A stretch of DNA of 62,901 nucleotides, the filler included, from Salisapilia sapeloensis CBS 127946 (Eukaryota > Protista > Oomycota), in NCBI GenBank assembly GCA_023334545.1. It is 17 parts of 17 records of this genome, joined end to end, with 100 filler letters (N's around TTAATTAATTAA, not from the genome) between each part and the next. Parts side by side here need not be neighbours in the genome. Positions count along the whole stretch, not along the records: positions 1 to 7,285 come from JAADVB010000521.1; 16 more parts are not named here. The stretch is one strand, 5' to 3'. A program made the translations under genes and the position numbers. Position 1 is the first letter of the stretch; each line of letters starts with the position of its first letter. This document shows, one piece after another, positions 1 to 7,285 of this stretch. The notes under the pieces were generated by a model, which saw only the letters and a program-made list of their open reading frames with translations, was not told where the DNA came from and ran no database searches.

Positions 1-141
1 ACGAGAAGAACGCGCCGACACTCATCATGGTGCATGCTCTAAACCCCTACGGCTTCGCTCGGCTGCGACGATTCAATGAAAACAACGTCGACATCAATCG
101 CAACTTTTTGACACCGGAAGAGTTTGCTCACCTGCAAAAGC
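1..141. repeat. Left arm of 141-bp perfect inverted repeat at the ends of contig 1
   Basis: Exact reverse complement of 7145-7285; identity stops at base 142. Confidence 0.97.
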
Positions 142-872
142 AGGATACGAATAAATACCACTACGACGAAATTGACTTTGCGCTGAATCCAGACGAAGAT
201 ATTGAAAAGATCACTTATTCATTCTGGCTCCAAGCGATAAGGATGTTAACAAAGTTTAGCTACGAAGCGATAAAAACGGGCGTAGTAGCAGGTAACTATC
301 ACTACCCAAAGACCGTCTACTATGGAGGTGACCGGATGGAGCTAAGCCTAAAGCTCCTACGTCAATTCCTACTGGATCATATCGACTTCAAGAGTCTTAA
401 AAAGTTTTCGTGTATGGACATCCACACTGGCCTGGGACCATCCGGGTATGACACAATGCTGTTAGAGACATCCAGTAACTTGGAATTGATCAAGTCGACG
501 TTACCGAAGGAGCATGAGGTGGGCAAATTAATTTTCATGGGGGACGACAAGGCCGCTGTATCGCAAGGGTATAATGCTGTAAAAGGTCTCGTGAATGCTG
601 GCATCGCCTCCATGCTACCAAAGCAGCTACTTCCAAAGGCTATTCTCGTGACACAGGAGTTTGGCACCGTCCCAGGTGTCTTTATCCTGAAGGCGACGGT
701 GGAGGAAAACGCTATGTATCATCACAAACCAGCTCGTCGGCAACCGTATGCAGAAAAACTTCGAGACGCCTTTTACATCAGCAAGAGTCCCAGTTGGAAG
801 GCAAATGTCATTGACCGAGGCATCTCGGTCTTTGATCAGATCTACGAGTACACTTCGCCTCGTGAAAATTAA
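3..872 (+). CDS. DUF2817 / M14-like zinc carboxypeptidase, copy A (5' partial)
   Basis: Motifs HALNPYGFARLRRFNENNVDINRNF, DIHTGLG and QEFGT. The frame is open to the contig edge (EKNAPTLIM...), so ATG 27 is not the true start. Confidence 0.85.
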   Translation, partial: EKNAPTLIMVHALNPYGFARLRRFNENNVDINRNFLTPEEFAHLQKQDTNKYHYDEIDFALNPDEDIEKITYSFWLQAIRMLTKFSYEAIKTGVVAGNYHYPKTVYYGGDRMELSLKLLRQFLLDHIDFKSLKKFSCMDIHTGLGPSGYDTMLLETSSNLELIKSTLPKEHEVGKLIFMGDDKAAVSQGYNAVKGLVNAGIASMLPKQLLPKAILVTQEFGTVPGVFILKATVEENAMYHHKPARRQPYAEKLRDAFYISKSPSWKANVIDRGISVFDQIYEYTSPREN

Positions 873-958
873 AGAATTTGCCTTTTCTTTCGTTTTATTT
901 TTAAACTTATGGAGCTTTAAAGGTCACACGACCGGACAGACCAAGAGACACGAGACGG

Positions 959-1951
959 ATGAGTGCCAGCATCGACTCTAGACTACAGATGGATGGCGTA
1001 GAAAAAAGATATAATTCAAATGCAGGGCAATTGATACCCTATAGTGAAGACGGCCTTGAAAAGGTTATAAATATGGCATGTGTGGATGCCAAGTCCATGA
1101 ACCCGTTTCAAGGATCGAGCTCTACACTGCCGTTTGCAGACACTTCCGATCGCAAATTACCACCTAAGGCGTTGTCACTACTCGTAAGGAGCTTAACGCC
1201 GCAGACTTGGAAGGAGGTGAAGCAATCGCCGCCGAATGTCTGCAAAACGGACACGCGAAAGAGGTCATCTACTAAAAGAGTGCACGCCGATGCACCATCA
1301 AAGCGTAGGTCTTCTTCAACAAAGACTAAGAAACGCCGCGACAGGTCTAGTGCAAAAGCTGGGCGGAAGTATGCCAACCAAGACGACATGTATGGAGCAT
1401 TCAGTGGTGATGAATCCTTTGATGAAGAGTTATTAAAACCGATAGAGGGTCAGACCGAGAATAAGCAGAACTTTGATCATATCTTGGGAGCAGGTGAGTA
1501 CGGATGCACAAACAAAGACAAGAAGAGACCAGAGATAAGGTCAACAGAAGTTACTGATCCGAAGCGCACAGAGACGATTGACAACTCGTTATGTCGCTTG
1601 TCTAAGAAGGAAGAGCTCGACAAGGGGCGGATGTACGATGACGAGTACTTGAATGCAATCGATTGTCAGATGTCTTCACTTGAGGAAAAGAAGTTAGAAA
1701 TTGCTCGAGAACAAAAGGTAGAGGAGGATAATAGCCGAAGACTCAAGCTAGATCTAGTCGCTTCCATTCGAAAAGCACACGTATGTAGGTTTCAACCGCT
1801 ACACTTGGTCAGCGACCTACCAAGAGACGATCTACTCCTGAAGAGAAAGCCTATGCGAAAGGATAAATCAAGTCCGTCGCACAGAGAAGAGCGATCGATG
1901 AAAAAGCCTCGACGAAAGCGAAGTCGTTCATCTCGAAAAGACATTGCATAA
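959..1951 (+). CDS. Hypothetical K/R/S-rich protein, possibly nuclear
   Basis: 330-aa ORF with basic clusters and a coiled-coil-like stretch; no recognisable family motif. Confidence 0.55.
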   Translation: MSASIDSRLQMDGVEKRYNSNAGQLIPYSEDGLEKVINMACVDAKSMNPFQGSSSTLPFADTSDRKLPPKALSLLVRSLTPQTWKEVKQSPPNVCKTDTRKRSSTKRVHADAPSKRRSSSTKTKKRRDRSSAKAGRKYANQDDMYGAFSGDESFDEELLKPIEGQTENKQNFDHILGAGEYGCTNKDKKRPEIRSTEVTDPKRTETIDNSLCRLSKKEELDKGRMYDDEYLNAIDCQMSSLEEKKLEIAREQKVEEDNSRRLKLDLVASIRKAHVCRFQPLHLVSDLPRDDLLLKRKPMRKDKSSPSHREERSMKKPRRKRSRSSRKDIA

Positions 1952-1977
1952 CAACGTGAGAGGTTTATAAACTTTTA

Positions 1978-2847
1978 CTAGACTTCTTGCTTCATCTTTT
2001 TCTTTTCTATCTCCATCTTCTCCTGTTGTTCCACCCAAATACGGGCACTTCTCCTGCCAAGATCAAAAAGCTCATCGAGCACCTCACTCTCCGGTGGCAG
2101 GAGTGCCATTGCTCCCAATTGCAGGACAGAGTAAGGGAACTTTTCATCAATCGAAGGTGATATCTCGTAGTCCGGACGACCTAACCTGGACGCAGGCAAC
2201 GCACACACTTTGACGTACCCTTCTATCTCTGGAACGAGTGTCCATAGCCCTCCATCCATATGCAGCTCGCCTCGGAACTCTGTTGCACCACGTCCAGATA
2301 AATAGTACGGAACGTAGCAACTGGCGATAATAGCGTCGCACAAGTCTTCAGGTGACAAGAACTCGTTGCAATGAAAGGCGTCCTGTGGAGGCCACACGCG
2401 TTGCGTCGCGATCGTCAGCCGATTGTTCAAGTCTTCAATCTTAATGCCACCGAATTTTGCATTAAAGATGTGACGAAGCCGTGGCTCTAGCTTGCCTACT
2501 GTGCCATACTCATGGCCGATTTTCGCCATGTTCTTGACCTCGTCCTGAATCTCTTGTATATCCTTCTTCGCTACAATTGAGAGTGCTGTGATGGCGCCAC
2601 CGGATGCACCAGCGACCTTGGAACGATCAGTCAAGTATCCATGCAGCTGCAATTCTTTTGCAACGCCGAGATGATAACTGAGTAGGAAGCCTGCGCCACT
2701 AAAACTAAAGTTGCGTGTTCTGGTGTAGAATTTGTCATCGCTCGATGGGTCTTTGGCTAGAGCTAGAGGCTGTAGCTGTAGCAGTGCGACGGAGCTACTC
2801 GCAACTACGGCTGCAGTGCCCGACCAGCGCAAGAGTCTTCGGTGCAT
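1978..2847 (-). CDS. Patatin-like phospholipase (PNPLA family)
   Basis: Gly-rich FSGAGFLLSYHLGV, nucleophile GASGG and DGG motif. Probable start MHRRLLRW (2847) resembles a targeting peptide; the ORF extends to 2907. Confidence 0.9.
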   Translation of the reverse strand: MHRRLLRWSGTAAVVASSSVALLQLQPLALAKDPSSDDKFYTRTRNFSFSGAGFLLSYHLGVAKELQLHGYLTDRSKVAGASGGAITALSIVAKKDIQEIQDEVKNMAKIGHEYGTVGKLEPRLRHIFNAKFGGIKIEDLNNRLTIATQRVWPPQDAFHCNEFLSPEDLCDAIIASCYVPYYLSGRGATEFRGELHMDGGLWTLVPEIEGYVKVCALPASRLGRPDYEISPSIDEKFPYSVLQLGAMALLPPESEVLDELFDLGRRSARIWVEQQEKMEIEKKKMKQEV

Positions 2848-3473
2848 TGGATAGTTCGTAGTGACTCTGAGAACGCCTACCAAATACGCACTTAAACTAC
2901 TGCGCATCTAATACTATAGAAAATCTGAAGGTGGAAATTGAAGCGAGCAAACTGATATCTGGGCCTAACTGCGATAGATGAATATTCTATTGATAGTAGT
3001 TCCTCGAGTTGGAAAGTAGGTAGAAGCAGAGTAAATGTCCACCACGATAATGATGCTTGCTAATCAATTAACGGTTTGTATTTATCCACGAGCAGATGTC
3101 GAGTTTCGGTAGTCGCTCCATACTCGTCTCCAAGTCTCTATCGGCTATATGGCATTTAAAGAAGCGGAAGAACACGCTAAGAAGAAGGAGACTCCCGTAA
3201 TATAACCAAAGTGCATTTGATACTCCCTTGTTTTCTGCAGTGACATCCTAGCCAGTTGTCCTGTCCATCGCCTTCTATAAAGGTTACCAGTCACTTGGAG
3301 TCAAAATCTAGAAAAAATGGTATGCAACGAGAGACAAGCATGCGCTATGTAATCTTTCCTTGTCTTGCAGTTCGTACTCTCTAGACCTGATTTTCAAATC
3401 ACATTTTCGCGTGCGGTGGTTGAGTCGACATTACGCGTGGTGCAGCTTGGATTTGAAAAGTAATTGGTTCTAC

Positions 3474-3490
3474 CTCACTTTCAATTTCGC
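3474..3490 (+). promoter_or_regulatory. Oomycete INR+FPR core promoter upstream of the MAPEG gene
   Basis: CTCACTTTCAATTTCGC matches YCAYTYY followed by MWTTTNC, about 40 nt before ATG 3530. Confidence 0.6.
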
Positions 3491-3529
3491 CGCTACCACT
3501 TGACACTTCGGTCCCCTTTCATATCCGTC

Positions 3530-4006
3530 ATGACTGCTTCTCTCCATTTAAAAGTCTTCGCAAGCTGTGCCGCAGTGCTCTTCTTTAAGGTTGCTATCAC
3601 CCAGCGAAAGCAAGCTGTCGCTGCATTCAAAGCTGGAGAGCGTGCTCCAGAGGATCAAGTTCTCGTGAAGGGCCCTCGAACTCAAAAGCAGCACTTTGGA
3701 CTGGATGCAAAGGATGATGACGAAAAGACCAAGAAAGCGAAGCAGGACAATGCTCGCTGGAAGCGCGTCGTCGCGAACGACACGGACAGCATCCCACTTG
3801 CTCTTGTCCTCTTTGGCACAGGTGCCCTTGTCGAGACACACTCCACGCTTCAAATCGCTACATTGACCACCTTCACTGTGGCTCGTATCCTGCACACGAT
3901 CTTGTACCTAAAAGCAAAGACCCCCCATCGCTCCATCGCTTTCCTCATCGGTGCCGCCGCTATTGTTGTCAGCCTCGCCGACACGCTCATCTGCGTCTAC
4001 GCATAA
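3530..4006 (+). CDS. MAPEG family membrane protein (microsomal GST / PGE synthase-like)
   Basis: Hydrophobic helices, RWKRVVANDTDSIP (RxxxNDxExI-like) and FTVARILHTILY motifs. Confidence 0.88.
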   Translation: MTASLHLKVFASCAAVLFFKVAITQRKQAVAAFKAGERAPEDQVLVKGPRTQKQHFGLDAKDDDEKTKKAKQDNARWKRVVANDTDSIPLALVLFGTGALVETHSTLQIATLTTFTVARILHTILYLKAKTPHRSIAFLIGAAAIVVSLADTLICVYA

Positions 4007-4108
4007 GCGCTGGAGCGCCCTACCAAGCCTAAGGAAGATAAAAATAAAAAGCATTGTTGAAACTCTCATCCAAGTAGCCACTGACGATAAAGTTTCCATC
4101 TCTCGATC

Positions 4109-5058
4109 ATGTTTTTCTGGGCAAAGTACGGCTTTGGTAACTAGATTTTACAGATGCAAATGATCTTAATGAAAGTACGTGACTGATCAGTACTACCACG
4201 TAGAACCGACGGAGGCAAAGATGTACAACTCGATGGTATCAGCTAGTATCTTGCTTAGCTTCTTGCAGACCAAGTGTGGTCACGAAATCGATGACTTTTG
4301 CAAGCAAAAGAGCCTACAGCTCAGTGTTGAGATTGATGCTTTGCAAAGATCACTCGGTAGTTTAACACGCCAAGGCTCGACTGCTAGCATGGCGAATATT
4401 CAAACATCTACGTCGAACCTAGAGTTGGAAGTTGAGGATGCTGCCGACAGCACTGCTCAATCAAAGTTGAATGATACTCAGCAATCGCTTATGGATCCTA
4501 CTGCATCGAGACCTACAAGTGGCGCATCTGCTAGACCACCAAGTGGAGAGTCAGCTAGACCTCCGAGTGCAAAGCTCACGTCGCGTCCAACCACGCCTGG
4601 CACAAATCGGAGTATAGCATCTTCAAGTAGCACGAGCCTGCTGCGGGATGACATCGCGCAGCCTGAAGACGGTATGGTTCAAAGTACACGAATGGAAAAA
4701 GAAGAGAAAGAGAAGCAATTGCAAACATTGAATACGGCAGCGAAGTTAGCAAAAGGTAGGTGTATATTTGAAACTGTTGAAAGATACTTTCCTGTCTCAT
4801 CCGTCAAGTAGAACTGTTAGCTGGATCTGCTCGGATGGACTTTGTGGATGATAACGGAGATCGCATGAGTGTCGATTCATTGGGACACGAGAAAGCGAGC
4901 TCCGTACTACAACCACGAGCCGAGTACACTGTCGCTATCATTCGTATGTATCCCTTTTGTCAGAATGCACACACCCGACGTGCTGAAGTACTTTTGTAGG
5001 CGACAATTCGGATGGCACCTCTACTGCAACATCGCTACTGTTTAAACTACATAGATAA
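4109..5058 (+). CDS. 4-exon gene, CXorf65/C22orf15-like small domain with a long low-complexity insert
   Basis: Introns 4137-4203, 4756-4811 and 4944-4999 (all GT..AG) give one frame: MFFWAKYGFEPTEAKMYN...LLSFLQTKCG...MDFVDDNG...ASSVLQPRAEYTVAII. The gene model is solid; the family call is by eye. Confidence 0.65.
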
Positions 5059-5221
5059 GTAAAAAAGATAGTAACAATTGGATAGTTCACCAGTATCATG
5101 TTTGTTCCACTCCTAGCAGATCATGAAATCATAAAAGAAATGCCATACAATGAAGAGAAAGCAAAGCGCATCCTTATAGTAAAGATCGCACCGACAGAGC
5201 TCTCTCCTGAGCTGACGGGCT

Positions 5222-5863
5222 TCAGATCTCGACAGGCTTGCCCTGGGAAGCGTAGTTGTCGTAGTACTCAACAACCTTGTCCCAGTTGGCGACGTTCCAG
5301 AACGCAGAGATGTACTCCGGACGACGGTTCTGGTACTTAAGGTAGTACGCGTGCTCCCACACGTCAAGACCGAGGATTGGGATCATCGGGTCGTCAACGT
5401 TCGGCATGAGCGGGTTGTCTTGGTTCGGCGTGGACGTGATGCCGAGCGAGCCATCGCTCTTAACACCGAGCCAGGCCCAGCCAGAGCCGAAGCGAGCAGA
5501 GGCAGCGGCGTTGAACTTGGTCTTCATCTCATCGAGCGAGCCAAAGTCCTTGTCAATCTGTTCCTTAAGCTTGCCCGAAGGAGCCGTGTTCGTGGAGCCA
5601 GGAGAGGTCATCCAGGTCCAGAAGAGCGAGTGGTTGTAGTGGCCACCACCGTTGTTACGCACAGGCGCAACGTCAGCGCTTTTAACGACTTCGACGATGG
5701 ACTTGCCCTGGAGAGACGAGCCAGCATCGGACGAGATGTAGTCGTTGATCTTGGTCACGTATCCGTTGTGGTGCTTGGTGTGATGAATGTTCATCGTGTC
5801 CGTGTCCACGAACGGCTCGAGAGCGTTGTAGTCATAAGAGAGCTTAGGCAATTCGAACGACAT
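5222..5863 (-). CDS. sodA: Mn superoxide dismutase, no transit peptide (probably cytosolic)
   Basis: [25 protein letters not shown] and DVWEHAYY motifs; in-frame upstream stop. Confidence 0.96.
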
Positions 5864-6422
5864 TCTTGCTTTTGTTGGAGTTGCTTCTTCTCAGCGCCGC
5901 AAAAAGGATAATGGCAACAATTTCTTCAATAAGATCTTTTCCTCGAATTCGACTGATTATTTACCAATGAGAAATTTTCTTTCGATTTTCTACTAATCAC
6001 ACAGGACGTGTAAAATGACGCGGATGATAACGCAAACACCAAGGCGAAAGTTTTCTAACCAACAGTGTTTGAAGTCCAATTGAAGCGAATTGAAGTCGAG
6101 TCAAAAGGCTGAGGTGATCTAGCAGGTAGTCCACAGTAGTTTTTCATTCAATTTGATTATCGAACAAATTGTGCAGTACCTTTGGTTTTATAGTAAAGTC
6201 ATGACACGGCTTAACGTTAATTACTATCTGAGTTTCCACGTCTACTACTTTCTGCTACGAGGTTCAAGAGATGGTAGTGGAAGATCTAGGTAGGAAATGC
6301 TTCTCTAATGTGTATATAGACGTGGATGAGAAACTTCATCAAACTCAATTGACAAAATTGTACTTGAATTGATTGTCTTTTCCTTGCATGATCTCGGAGC
6401 ATTCCTTGCATGTCAACGGGAT

Positions 6423-7283
6423 CTACTGAGGAGAGGTGGCTTTTAGAGTTCTCTCAAAGACCGAGACACCCCTCATGATGATGTCGCTCTTCCAGCTTGG
6501 GCTCTTATTTATGTAGAAAGCATCTCGCAGCGTTTCGGCATATGGGAGACGACGCTCAATCTTGCTGTGATACATGTAATTCTCTTCAATGATAGTCTTG
6601 AACACAAACGGCAGCGGAACCGTGCCAAATTCTTGTGCAAAGATGACCGTATTGGATTGCACTGACGTAGGCAACATATTGAAGATACCAGTCATGATAT
6701 CGCCTGCAATGTCGTATTCCTTAATCAAAGCGTCACCTGCATTCCCAATAACAGAAATCCTTCCTTGTTTATCCTCCTCCGACAAAGCTTCCTTCACGCG
6801 ACCACCAGACGTCTTCCCGCTCGCAATGAGTGTGTCTTTACCAGGGGCACCCAGACCGGTGTGGACGTCAATGCAGGCAAAGCTTTTCAGCTGATCTAAT
6901 TGAACGTGGTTCTTCAAAAATTGCTTCAGCAGTATCAAGCTAGGTTGCAGCTCATCGCCACCGTAAAAGATACCCTTTCGATCATGGTATGTTCCGGACA
7001 CAAAGGCAGCCTTTATAGTTGCCATACTGTACTGGAGCAACGTTCGTCCCAAGTGGTACCAGAACGAGTAGGTAACTTGCTCAATATCTGTATCAGGATC
7101 AAACAATGGCCTGAGATCCTCATAATGCTGTCTGTTCGGATCTAGCTTTTGCAGGTGAGCAAACTCTTCCGGTGTCAAAAAGTTGCGATTGATGTCGACG
7201 TTGTTTTCATTGAATCGTCGCAGCCGAGCGAAGCCGTAGGGGTTTAGAGCATGCACCATGATGAGTGTCGGCGCGTTCTTCTC
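6423..7283 (-). CDS. DUF2817 / M14-like zinc carboxypeptidase, copy B (5' partial)
   Basis: Same motifs as copy A (HALNPYG, DVHTGLG, QEFGT). First 141 nt identical to copy A, the rest strongly diverged. Confidence 0.85.
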   Translation of the reverse strand, partial: EKNAPTLIMVHALNPYGFARLRRFNENNVDINRNFLTPEEFAHLQKLDPNRQHYEDLRPLFDPDTDIEQVTYSFWYHLGRTLLQYSMATIKAAFVSGTYHDRKGIFYGGDELQPSLILLKQFLKNHVQLDQLKSFACIDVHTGLGAPGKDTLIASGKTSGGRVKEALSEEDKQGRISVIGNAGDALIKEYDIAGDIMTGIFNMLPTSVQSNTVIFAQEFGTVPLPFVFKTIIEENYMYHSKIERRLPYAETLRDAFYINKSPSWKSDIIMRGVSVFERTLKATSPQ

Positions 7284-7285
7284 GT
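7145..7285. repeat. Right arm of the contig 1 inverted repeat
   Basis: Exact reverse complement of 1-141. Confidence 0.97.

Follow-up and report, generated by a model that had tools for sequence, protein, structure and literature searches.

Partial homogenisation, probably by gene conversion, of an inverted pair of old DUF2817 paralogues in Salisapilia sapeloensis

Results

Inward-facing DUF2817 genes with an abrupt step in identity

The window analysed here is a stretch of 62,901 nucleotides (nt), filler included, from the oomycete Salisapilia sapeloensis CBS 127946 (GenBank assembly GCA_023334545.1). This report concerns positions 1–7285 of the window, which are the whole of one contig (C836) in an assembly of 22.4 Mb in 1365 contigs. 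Each end of C836 carries part of a gene of the M14-like peptidase family DUF2817, and the two genes, copy A on the left and copy B on the right, point inward and lie 5.5 kb apart. Both copies scored 171 bits against the Pfam profile PF10994 (cut-off 23) over profile positions 88–340. As the match starts at profile position 88, both are truncated at the contig edge, and the first quarter of each gene is absent from C836. Copy A is 49% identical to oomycete homologues of 408–421 amino acids, and neither copy exceeds 49% identity to Globisporangium, Phytophthora and Pythium proteins.

A repeat search of the contig found arms at 1–169 and 7117–7285 that are inverted at 94% identity. Direct reading and a codon alignment showed that 141/141 bases are identical between 1–141 and the reverse complement of 7145–7285, that every base is the same in the first 46 codons of the alignment, and that the copies part at a single base, after ...CACCTGCAAAAGC. 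Over the 239 aligned codons beyond this tract, identity is 53% at the nucleotide level, 30.5% at third codon positions and 44% at the amino acid level (106/239); the overall identity of the two copies is 53%, compared to 44% past the tract. An earlier reading made from the sequence alone (the sequence-only reading) had described inward-pointing paralogues, identical for 141 nt up to the contig edge and switching at one base to heavy divergence, and the alignment confirmed that description. The number of synonymous substitutions per synonymous site (dS, Nei–Gojobori method, NG86) was 0 within the tract, and dS was undefined, i.e. saturated, in all later 30-codon windows.

A chance run of 141 matches at 53% identity per site has a probability near 1e-39. 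Chance and purifying selection were both ruled out as the source of the identity, with 47/47 third positions identical in the tract compared to 30% downstream. Haplotype alleles were also ruled out, as both copies are convergent on one contig and their synonymous sites are saturated. The sequence-only reading had itself raised the allelic explanation; the copies proved to be distinct loci on one contig with non-homologous flanks.

In a maximum-likelihood tree of the C-terminal half, copies A and B were sisters with support of 100/98. The C-terminal branch of copy B (1.19) was about 3-fold longer than that of copy A (0.38). The HTGLG and QEFGT motifs are nevertheless kept in both copies, including the faster-evolving copy B; from what is known of M14 peptidases, we take these motifs to contain the putative third zinc ligand and the catalytic Glu, respectively. 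The M14 metal-binding set consists of an HxxE motif, expected in the N-terminal third, and a later His and Glu. A sequence search of the PDB returned no solved structural relative. Homologues of these proteins are labelled “secreted” or “RxLR-like” in some sources. From the tree and the alignment we conclude that the A/B duplication is lineage-specific but old. Its age follows from the saturated dS, and the 5' identity must therefore be recent.

The shared length equals the overlap of the assembler

Adjacent unitigs of a de Bruijn graph overlap by k where the graph branches, and contigs end at these nodes with the junction k-mer included; the default largest k of MEGAHIT is 141. In the control contig C837, positions 1–141 and 7142–7282 are each 100% shared with the ends of two other contigs (C256 and C141 for the first, C1261 and C453 for the second). 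We also sampled 22 other whole contigs, 20 of 7–8 kb and 2 of 1.9 kb. Three of them (C822, C828 and C838) carry inverted repeats of exactly 141 nt at their ends, such that four of 23 whole contigs carry this feature when C836 is counted. Two further contigs with DUF2817 sequence at their ends, C553 and C541 (see below), likewise share exactly 141 nt before their first mismatch. Judged from these contig ends, the assembly is a de Bruijn graph with k=141, and the 141 nt are an assembler overlap rather than a biological length. The ends of C836 share exactly 141 nt because the contig stops at the junction k-mer on both sides. As the length equals the junction overlap, all that follows from it is that the repeat is at least this long. 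The 141-nt tract of the sequence-only reading thus stands as a lower bound, but not as a biological length, since it equals k. More generally, where a contig built from short reads has inverted ends that match over k bases, an inverted repeat has been collapsed, and the length shared at such ends is the k of the assembler and is uninformative about the true length of the repeat.

The other contigs of the sample differ in what lies inside their ends. In C822 and C838 (about 7.3–7.8 kb), the arms beyond the 141-mer are unrelated and look non-coding, and each of these contigs is probably single-copy DNA flanked on both sides by a repeat in inverted orientation. C828 (L030, 1–7582) holds a second convergent paralogue pair of this genome, with an exact 141-nt terminal inverted repeat. 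Its open reading frames (ORFs) span 2–1360 (+) and 7581–6226 (−), with start codons 1 nt from the contig ends. The two C828 proteins are 63% identical in a mosaic pattern, residues 1–47 and 118–192 being identical and the rest diverged, and they gave only weak bZIP-like matches below the Pfam threshold. The segment at about 730–3050 of C835 belongs to a family of dispersed repeats, of which at least 40 copies, 69–84% identical, occur across the assembly, many of them at contig ends; this family is probably a transposable element.

Two flanking contigs carry the 5' coding sequence

A protein search with a full-length homologue located the DUF2817 N-terminus on two further contigs, C553 (23 kb) and C541 (25 kb), in both cases at 1–228 on the minus strand and aligning to residues 11–84 of the homologue (P0001). 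Each contig holds a start codon (258–256) and the first 86 codons. The two are identical over 1–141, have one synonymous difference at 142 and are then identical up to the start codon, and the first 86 residues of the encoded proteins are identical. The base at 142 that tells the contigs apart is T in C553 and C in C541 and lies 116 nt from the point at which the flanks diverge. Upstream of the start codon there are three differences in the next 16 nt, and past about 274 the sequences are unrelated. The flank of C553 encodes Naf1/Gar1 and LRR proteins, and that of C541 encodes a GAS-like protein and Suf/CstF77. That A and B are distinct loci follows from their 3' halves, which lie on one contig, from the non-homologous flanks with different genes, and from the one coding base that distinguishes the two copies. 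The sequence-only reading had proposed that both 5' halves collapsed into one node and that the tract runs beyond the contig edge; the presence of the same 5' coding sequence on C553 and C541 bears this out.

Comparison with nine homologues placed a gap of 41–49 residues between the 86-residue N-terminal piece and the start of C836. With this gap included the protein would be about 420 amino acids long, which fits the DUF2817 family. By this estimate, the absent node that joins the flanks to C836 is about 125–150 nt plus two 141-nt overlaps, or roughly 405–430 nt in all. The region expected to hold the HxxE motif of both copies falls within it. The node was probably dropped by a size filter of the assembly, in which the smallest contig that we saw is 1.9 kb. 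DNA, pattern, Pfam and protein searches of the genome found no third contig with the 141-mer or with profile positions 85–136. A genome search with PF10994 found only the two truncated copies, and the assembly contains no other DUF2817 N-terminal piece besides those of C553 and C541. The first 37 nt of C836 had no match in one scan of metagenome contigs. The order of the locus would be C553 flank, start codon, tract, 3' half, 5.5-kb spacer, inverted 3' half, inverted tract, start codon and C541 flank. If the absent node holds no intron, the near-identical tract would be about 540–565 nt long and would extend from the start codon to about codon 180.

The same step occurs in direct pairs of other oomycetes

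In relatives, DUF2817 genes are arranged as head-to-tail arrays. Where these intact genes have an annotated intron, it was removed before dS was calculated. The first two copies of the Pythium oligandrum array (L007:8458–11293) have two differences in their first 527 nt, which include an identical 63-nt intron, followed by an abrupt fall to 55–86% identity per 60-nt window. Their dS is 0–0.1 in the tract and 0.8 to saturated beyond it. Unequal crossover was ruled out as the origin of this chimeric pattern, as the third copy matches neither half. In a tandem pair of Aphanomyces stellatus (L009:8151–11226), amino acid identity is 95% in the N-terminal part compared to 59% in the C-terminal part, and dS is 0.1–0.7 in the 5' windows and 0.9–1.8 from about codon 240; the boundary is more mosaic in this pair.

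Each species' pair forms sisters in the C-terminal tree, and the duplications are therefore independent. In all three lineages with the step, the tract starts within about 3–16 nt of the start codon. It ends after a D(L/I)NRN motif, 2 codons past the motif in P. oligandrum, 12 codons past it in the Salisapilia pair and about 23 codons past it in A. stellatus. The comparison with related genomes that the sequence-only reading had called for uncovered the same homogenisation of the 5' half in direct pairs. Inversion is impossible between direct repeats, and we therefore attribute the step to conversion between adjacent DUF2817 copies, regardless of their orientation. We did not find parallel start and end boundaries in independent duplications described for DUF2817, a family that is scarcely covered in the literature.

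Genes of the spacer

The features of C836 are listed in Table 1. The two spacer ORFs without a family may be lineage-specific, or they may be intron-containing genes that were read incompletely. The superoxide dismutase (SOD) of the spacer is 84% identical to its Phytophthora counterpart, 79% to that of Aphanomyces and 77% to that of Albugo, and an exact-sequence look-up of this protein returned no record. With the nearest SOD match at 84% and the DUF2817 copies at no more than 49%, the databases searched seem to hold no close sequenced relative of this oomycete lineage. Shared synteny was not found: the DUF2817 arrays of the relatives sit between ELMO/PH and L7Ae or RME-8 genes, and not by SOD, MAPEG or patatin genes.

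Table 1. Features of contig C836 (positions 1–7285 of the window)
Feature	Coordinates	Strand	Evidence and remarks
Left-end junction k-mer	1..141	+	Last 141 nt of the near-identical 5' tract, DUF2817 copy A; encodes ...EKNAPTLIMVHALNPYGFARLRRFNENNVDINRNFLTPEEFAHLQK
DUF2817 copy A (M14-like peptidase family), 3' 289 codons + stop	3..872	+	PF10994, E 8e-50, profile 88–340/341; 5' end cut by contig edge
ORF, 330 amino acids, no family	959..1951	+	No Pfam match
Patatin-like phospholipase	1978..2907	-	PF01734, E 3.6e-17
MAPEG-family membrane protein	3464..4006	+	PF01124, E 3.6e-15
ORF, 210 amino acids, no family	4179..4811	+	Only a sub-threshold coiled-coil match
Fe/Mn superoxide dismutase	5222..5863	-	PF00081 + PF02777; 84% identical to Phytophthora MnSOD
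DUF2817 copy B, 3' 286 codons + stop	6423..7283	-	PF10994, E 6e-50, profile 88–340/341; 5' end cut by contig edge
Right-end junction k-mer	7145..7285	-	Same 141 nt as 1–141, inverted; 100% identity

Discussion

The most probable explanation of these results, to which we give a probability of roughly 80%, is that the locus is an inverted pair of old paralogues whose 5' half was homogenised by interlocus (ectopic) gene conversion and was then collapsed by an assembler with k=141. The inverted repeat would be genuine and belong to the nuclear genome of an oomycete, with C836 as its single-copy spacer. An old lineage-specific duplication would have produced the two convergent DUF2817 paralogues, and recent interlocus conversion would have homogenised their coding sequence between the start codon and about codon 180. 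Conversion would have spared the upstream regions and the 3' halves, which diverged to saturation, and in the assembly the near-identical tracts would have been merged into a single small node of about 405–430 nt. The sequence-only reading had attributed the identity step to recent conversion or recombination between old paralogues, in agreement with a dS of 0 inside the tract compared to saturation outside it.

Both boundaries of the tract lie at homologous positions and in frame, the 3' boundary being sharp at one base and the 5' boundary falling at about the start codon. Conversion requires high local identity, and the 5' limit at the start codon would be set by non-coding upstream DNA without alignable similarity. 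Two explanations may account for the 3' limit. The C-terminal halves may have become too diverged for heteroduplexes to form, or selection may act against tracts that enter the C-terminal half, where the two enzymes differ. From knowledge of M14 peptidases, we presume that this half holds the third metal ligand, the catalytic Glu and the specificity pocket. Homogenisation would then continue in one part of the gene after the other has escaped.

Several points weigh against this interpretation. Conversion and a past crossover, i.e. an inversion, between the arms leave the same sequence footprint at this locus; we infer that conversion by non-crossover repair, and not repeated inversion, made the tract. 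The node that links the flanks to C836 is absent, and both the continuity of the tract and the pairing of each flank with a copy are inferred. The shared 3' boundary may reflect a barrier of divergence or selection for different C-terminal halves. The pattern is also not universal, as tandem copies of P. insidiosum lack the identity step.

A single recent structural event in place of recurrent conversion, either an inverted partial duplication of the 5' 550 nt that replaced an old 5' half or one crossover between the arms, would also produce a sharp right-hand boundary. Only one difference was seen among 415 bases, and a single recent event would suffice. However, both boundaries preserve the reading frame and exact homology, as expected of homology-driven repair, and in practice such an event would amount to one conversion event. 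Tracts with these start and end points also recur in two other lineages whose duplications were independent, which further argues for a repeated and constrained process, and we regard a single structural event as unlikely.

The arrangement of the locus also resembles an invertible cassette. Recombination between arms of about 550 nt would flip the 7-kb spacer and swap the upstream regions between the C-terminal halves, which could serve as a regulated or phase-variable switch. The variable 3' halves are read inward from inverted identical arms, and the assembly graph is equally compatible with either orientation. The sequence-only reading was correct in its geometry, in that crossing over between the arms would reverse the spacer and swap the upstream regions; these regions do differ, and each would be joined to the opposite 3' half after a flip. 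The shufflon-like switch that it drew from this geometry is not supported. The direct pairs of P. oligandrum and A. stellatus, which have the same tract and boundaries, cannot invert. No recombinase domain was found by Pfam in spacer ORFs of at least 80 amino acids or in flank ORFs of at least 120 amino acids within the first 6 kb of each flank. Each copy has a start codon and upstream DNA unrelated to that of the other, so that there is no silent cassette. The N-terminal 86 residues are identical, as probably are all of the approximately 180 shared residues, and the proteins would therefore be unchanged by a flip. In addition, the same end topology was seen in three of the 22 other contigs sampled, and one of these, C828, holds a further convergent pair with mosaic identity. 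We therefore consider an invertible cassette very improbable. Occasional inversion by ordinary homologous recombination is possible. It is far less credible that the spacer flips by homologous recombination often enough for both isomers to coexist, with the tract from the start codon to the NRN motif maintained as an exchange site; if true, this would be a promoter-exchange switch in a eukaryote without a dedicated recombinase.

An assembly artefact, in which only one copy truly has the 5' segment and the other was joined to it by a chimeric or cross-strain link while its own diverged 5' half lies elsewhere, would fit with the missing node and with a bin that looks incomplete at 22.4 Mb in 1365 contigs, but is highly unlikely given that both junctions are in frame at a homologous codon, that two flanks with the same 5' coding sequence one base apart are the two exits and two entries expected of one collapsed node, that the assembly has no further DUF2817 N-terminal piece, and that a 141-nt overlap is its normal form of junction.

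Gene conversion as the source of the tract has precedents. Partial concerted evolution with conversion between paralogues has been described in Caenorhabditis (PMC3966223), the GOT1 paralogues of Tigriopus show conversion with islands of divergence (PMC3728101), mammalian gene pairs have undergone long-lasting conversion (PMC2720389), and CEACAM1 illustrates escape from conversion (PMC7042247). The DUF2817 pair resembles such cases in having a tract of a few hundred bases with dS near 0 in otherwise saturated paralogues, sharp boundaries, copies a few kb apart, and one part of the gene homogenised while the rest escapes. It differs from the published examples of partial conversion in that copies A and B are inverted and convergent, so that a crossover would invert the spacer rather than delete it, and in that the tracts of three oomycete lineages, which duplicated independently, all begin at the start codon and end at nearly the same place.

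The locus can also be compared with larger and with site-specific systems. The arms of sex-chromosome palindromes and of plastid inverted repeats, the latter existing as flip-flop isomers, undergo arm-to-arm gene conversion. By analogy, the arms of the DUF2817 pair may be kept identical by intrachromosomal recombination around a unique spacer, and the orientation of that spacer is ambiguous in assembly graphs and may be polymorphic. The arms of copies A and B are nonetheless about 0.55 kb and not tens of kb, and they lie within coding sequence as part of duplicated genes. The G segment of phage Mu, inverted by Gin, and the shufflon of plasmid R64 are site-specific invertible segments that swap protein C-termini. 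They share with the DUF2817 pair alternative 3' gene halves that are read inward from inverted repeats at the segment ends. These systems, however, are bacterial or phage-borne and have short crossover sites, a dedicated recombinase and one expressed constant part, whereas the A/B pair has two complete genes with their own start codons and long repeats of coding homology, and no recombinase was found. The contig ends themselves look like any repeat collapsed in a de Bruijn graph, with exactly 141 nt shared and the spacer between the inverted repeats forming one contig; the collapse of C836 reflects a real near-identical repeat rather than a false join.

The locus does not demonstrate a novel type of genetic switch. 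It is a new example of a known process, partial concerted evolution, with parallel boundaries in three oomycete lineages as a modest twist. For DUF2817 it provides a clean case of that process, in which, after three independent duplications, the half of the gene from the start codon to the NRN motif is near-identical while the 3' half diverges. If the boundary reflects selection, DUF2817 proteins may work as a constant N-terminal module joined to diversifying C-terminal modules.

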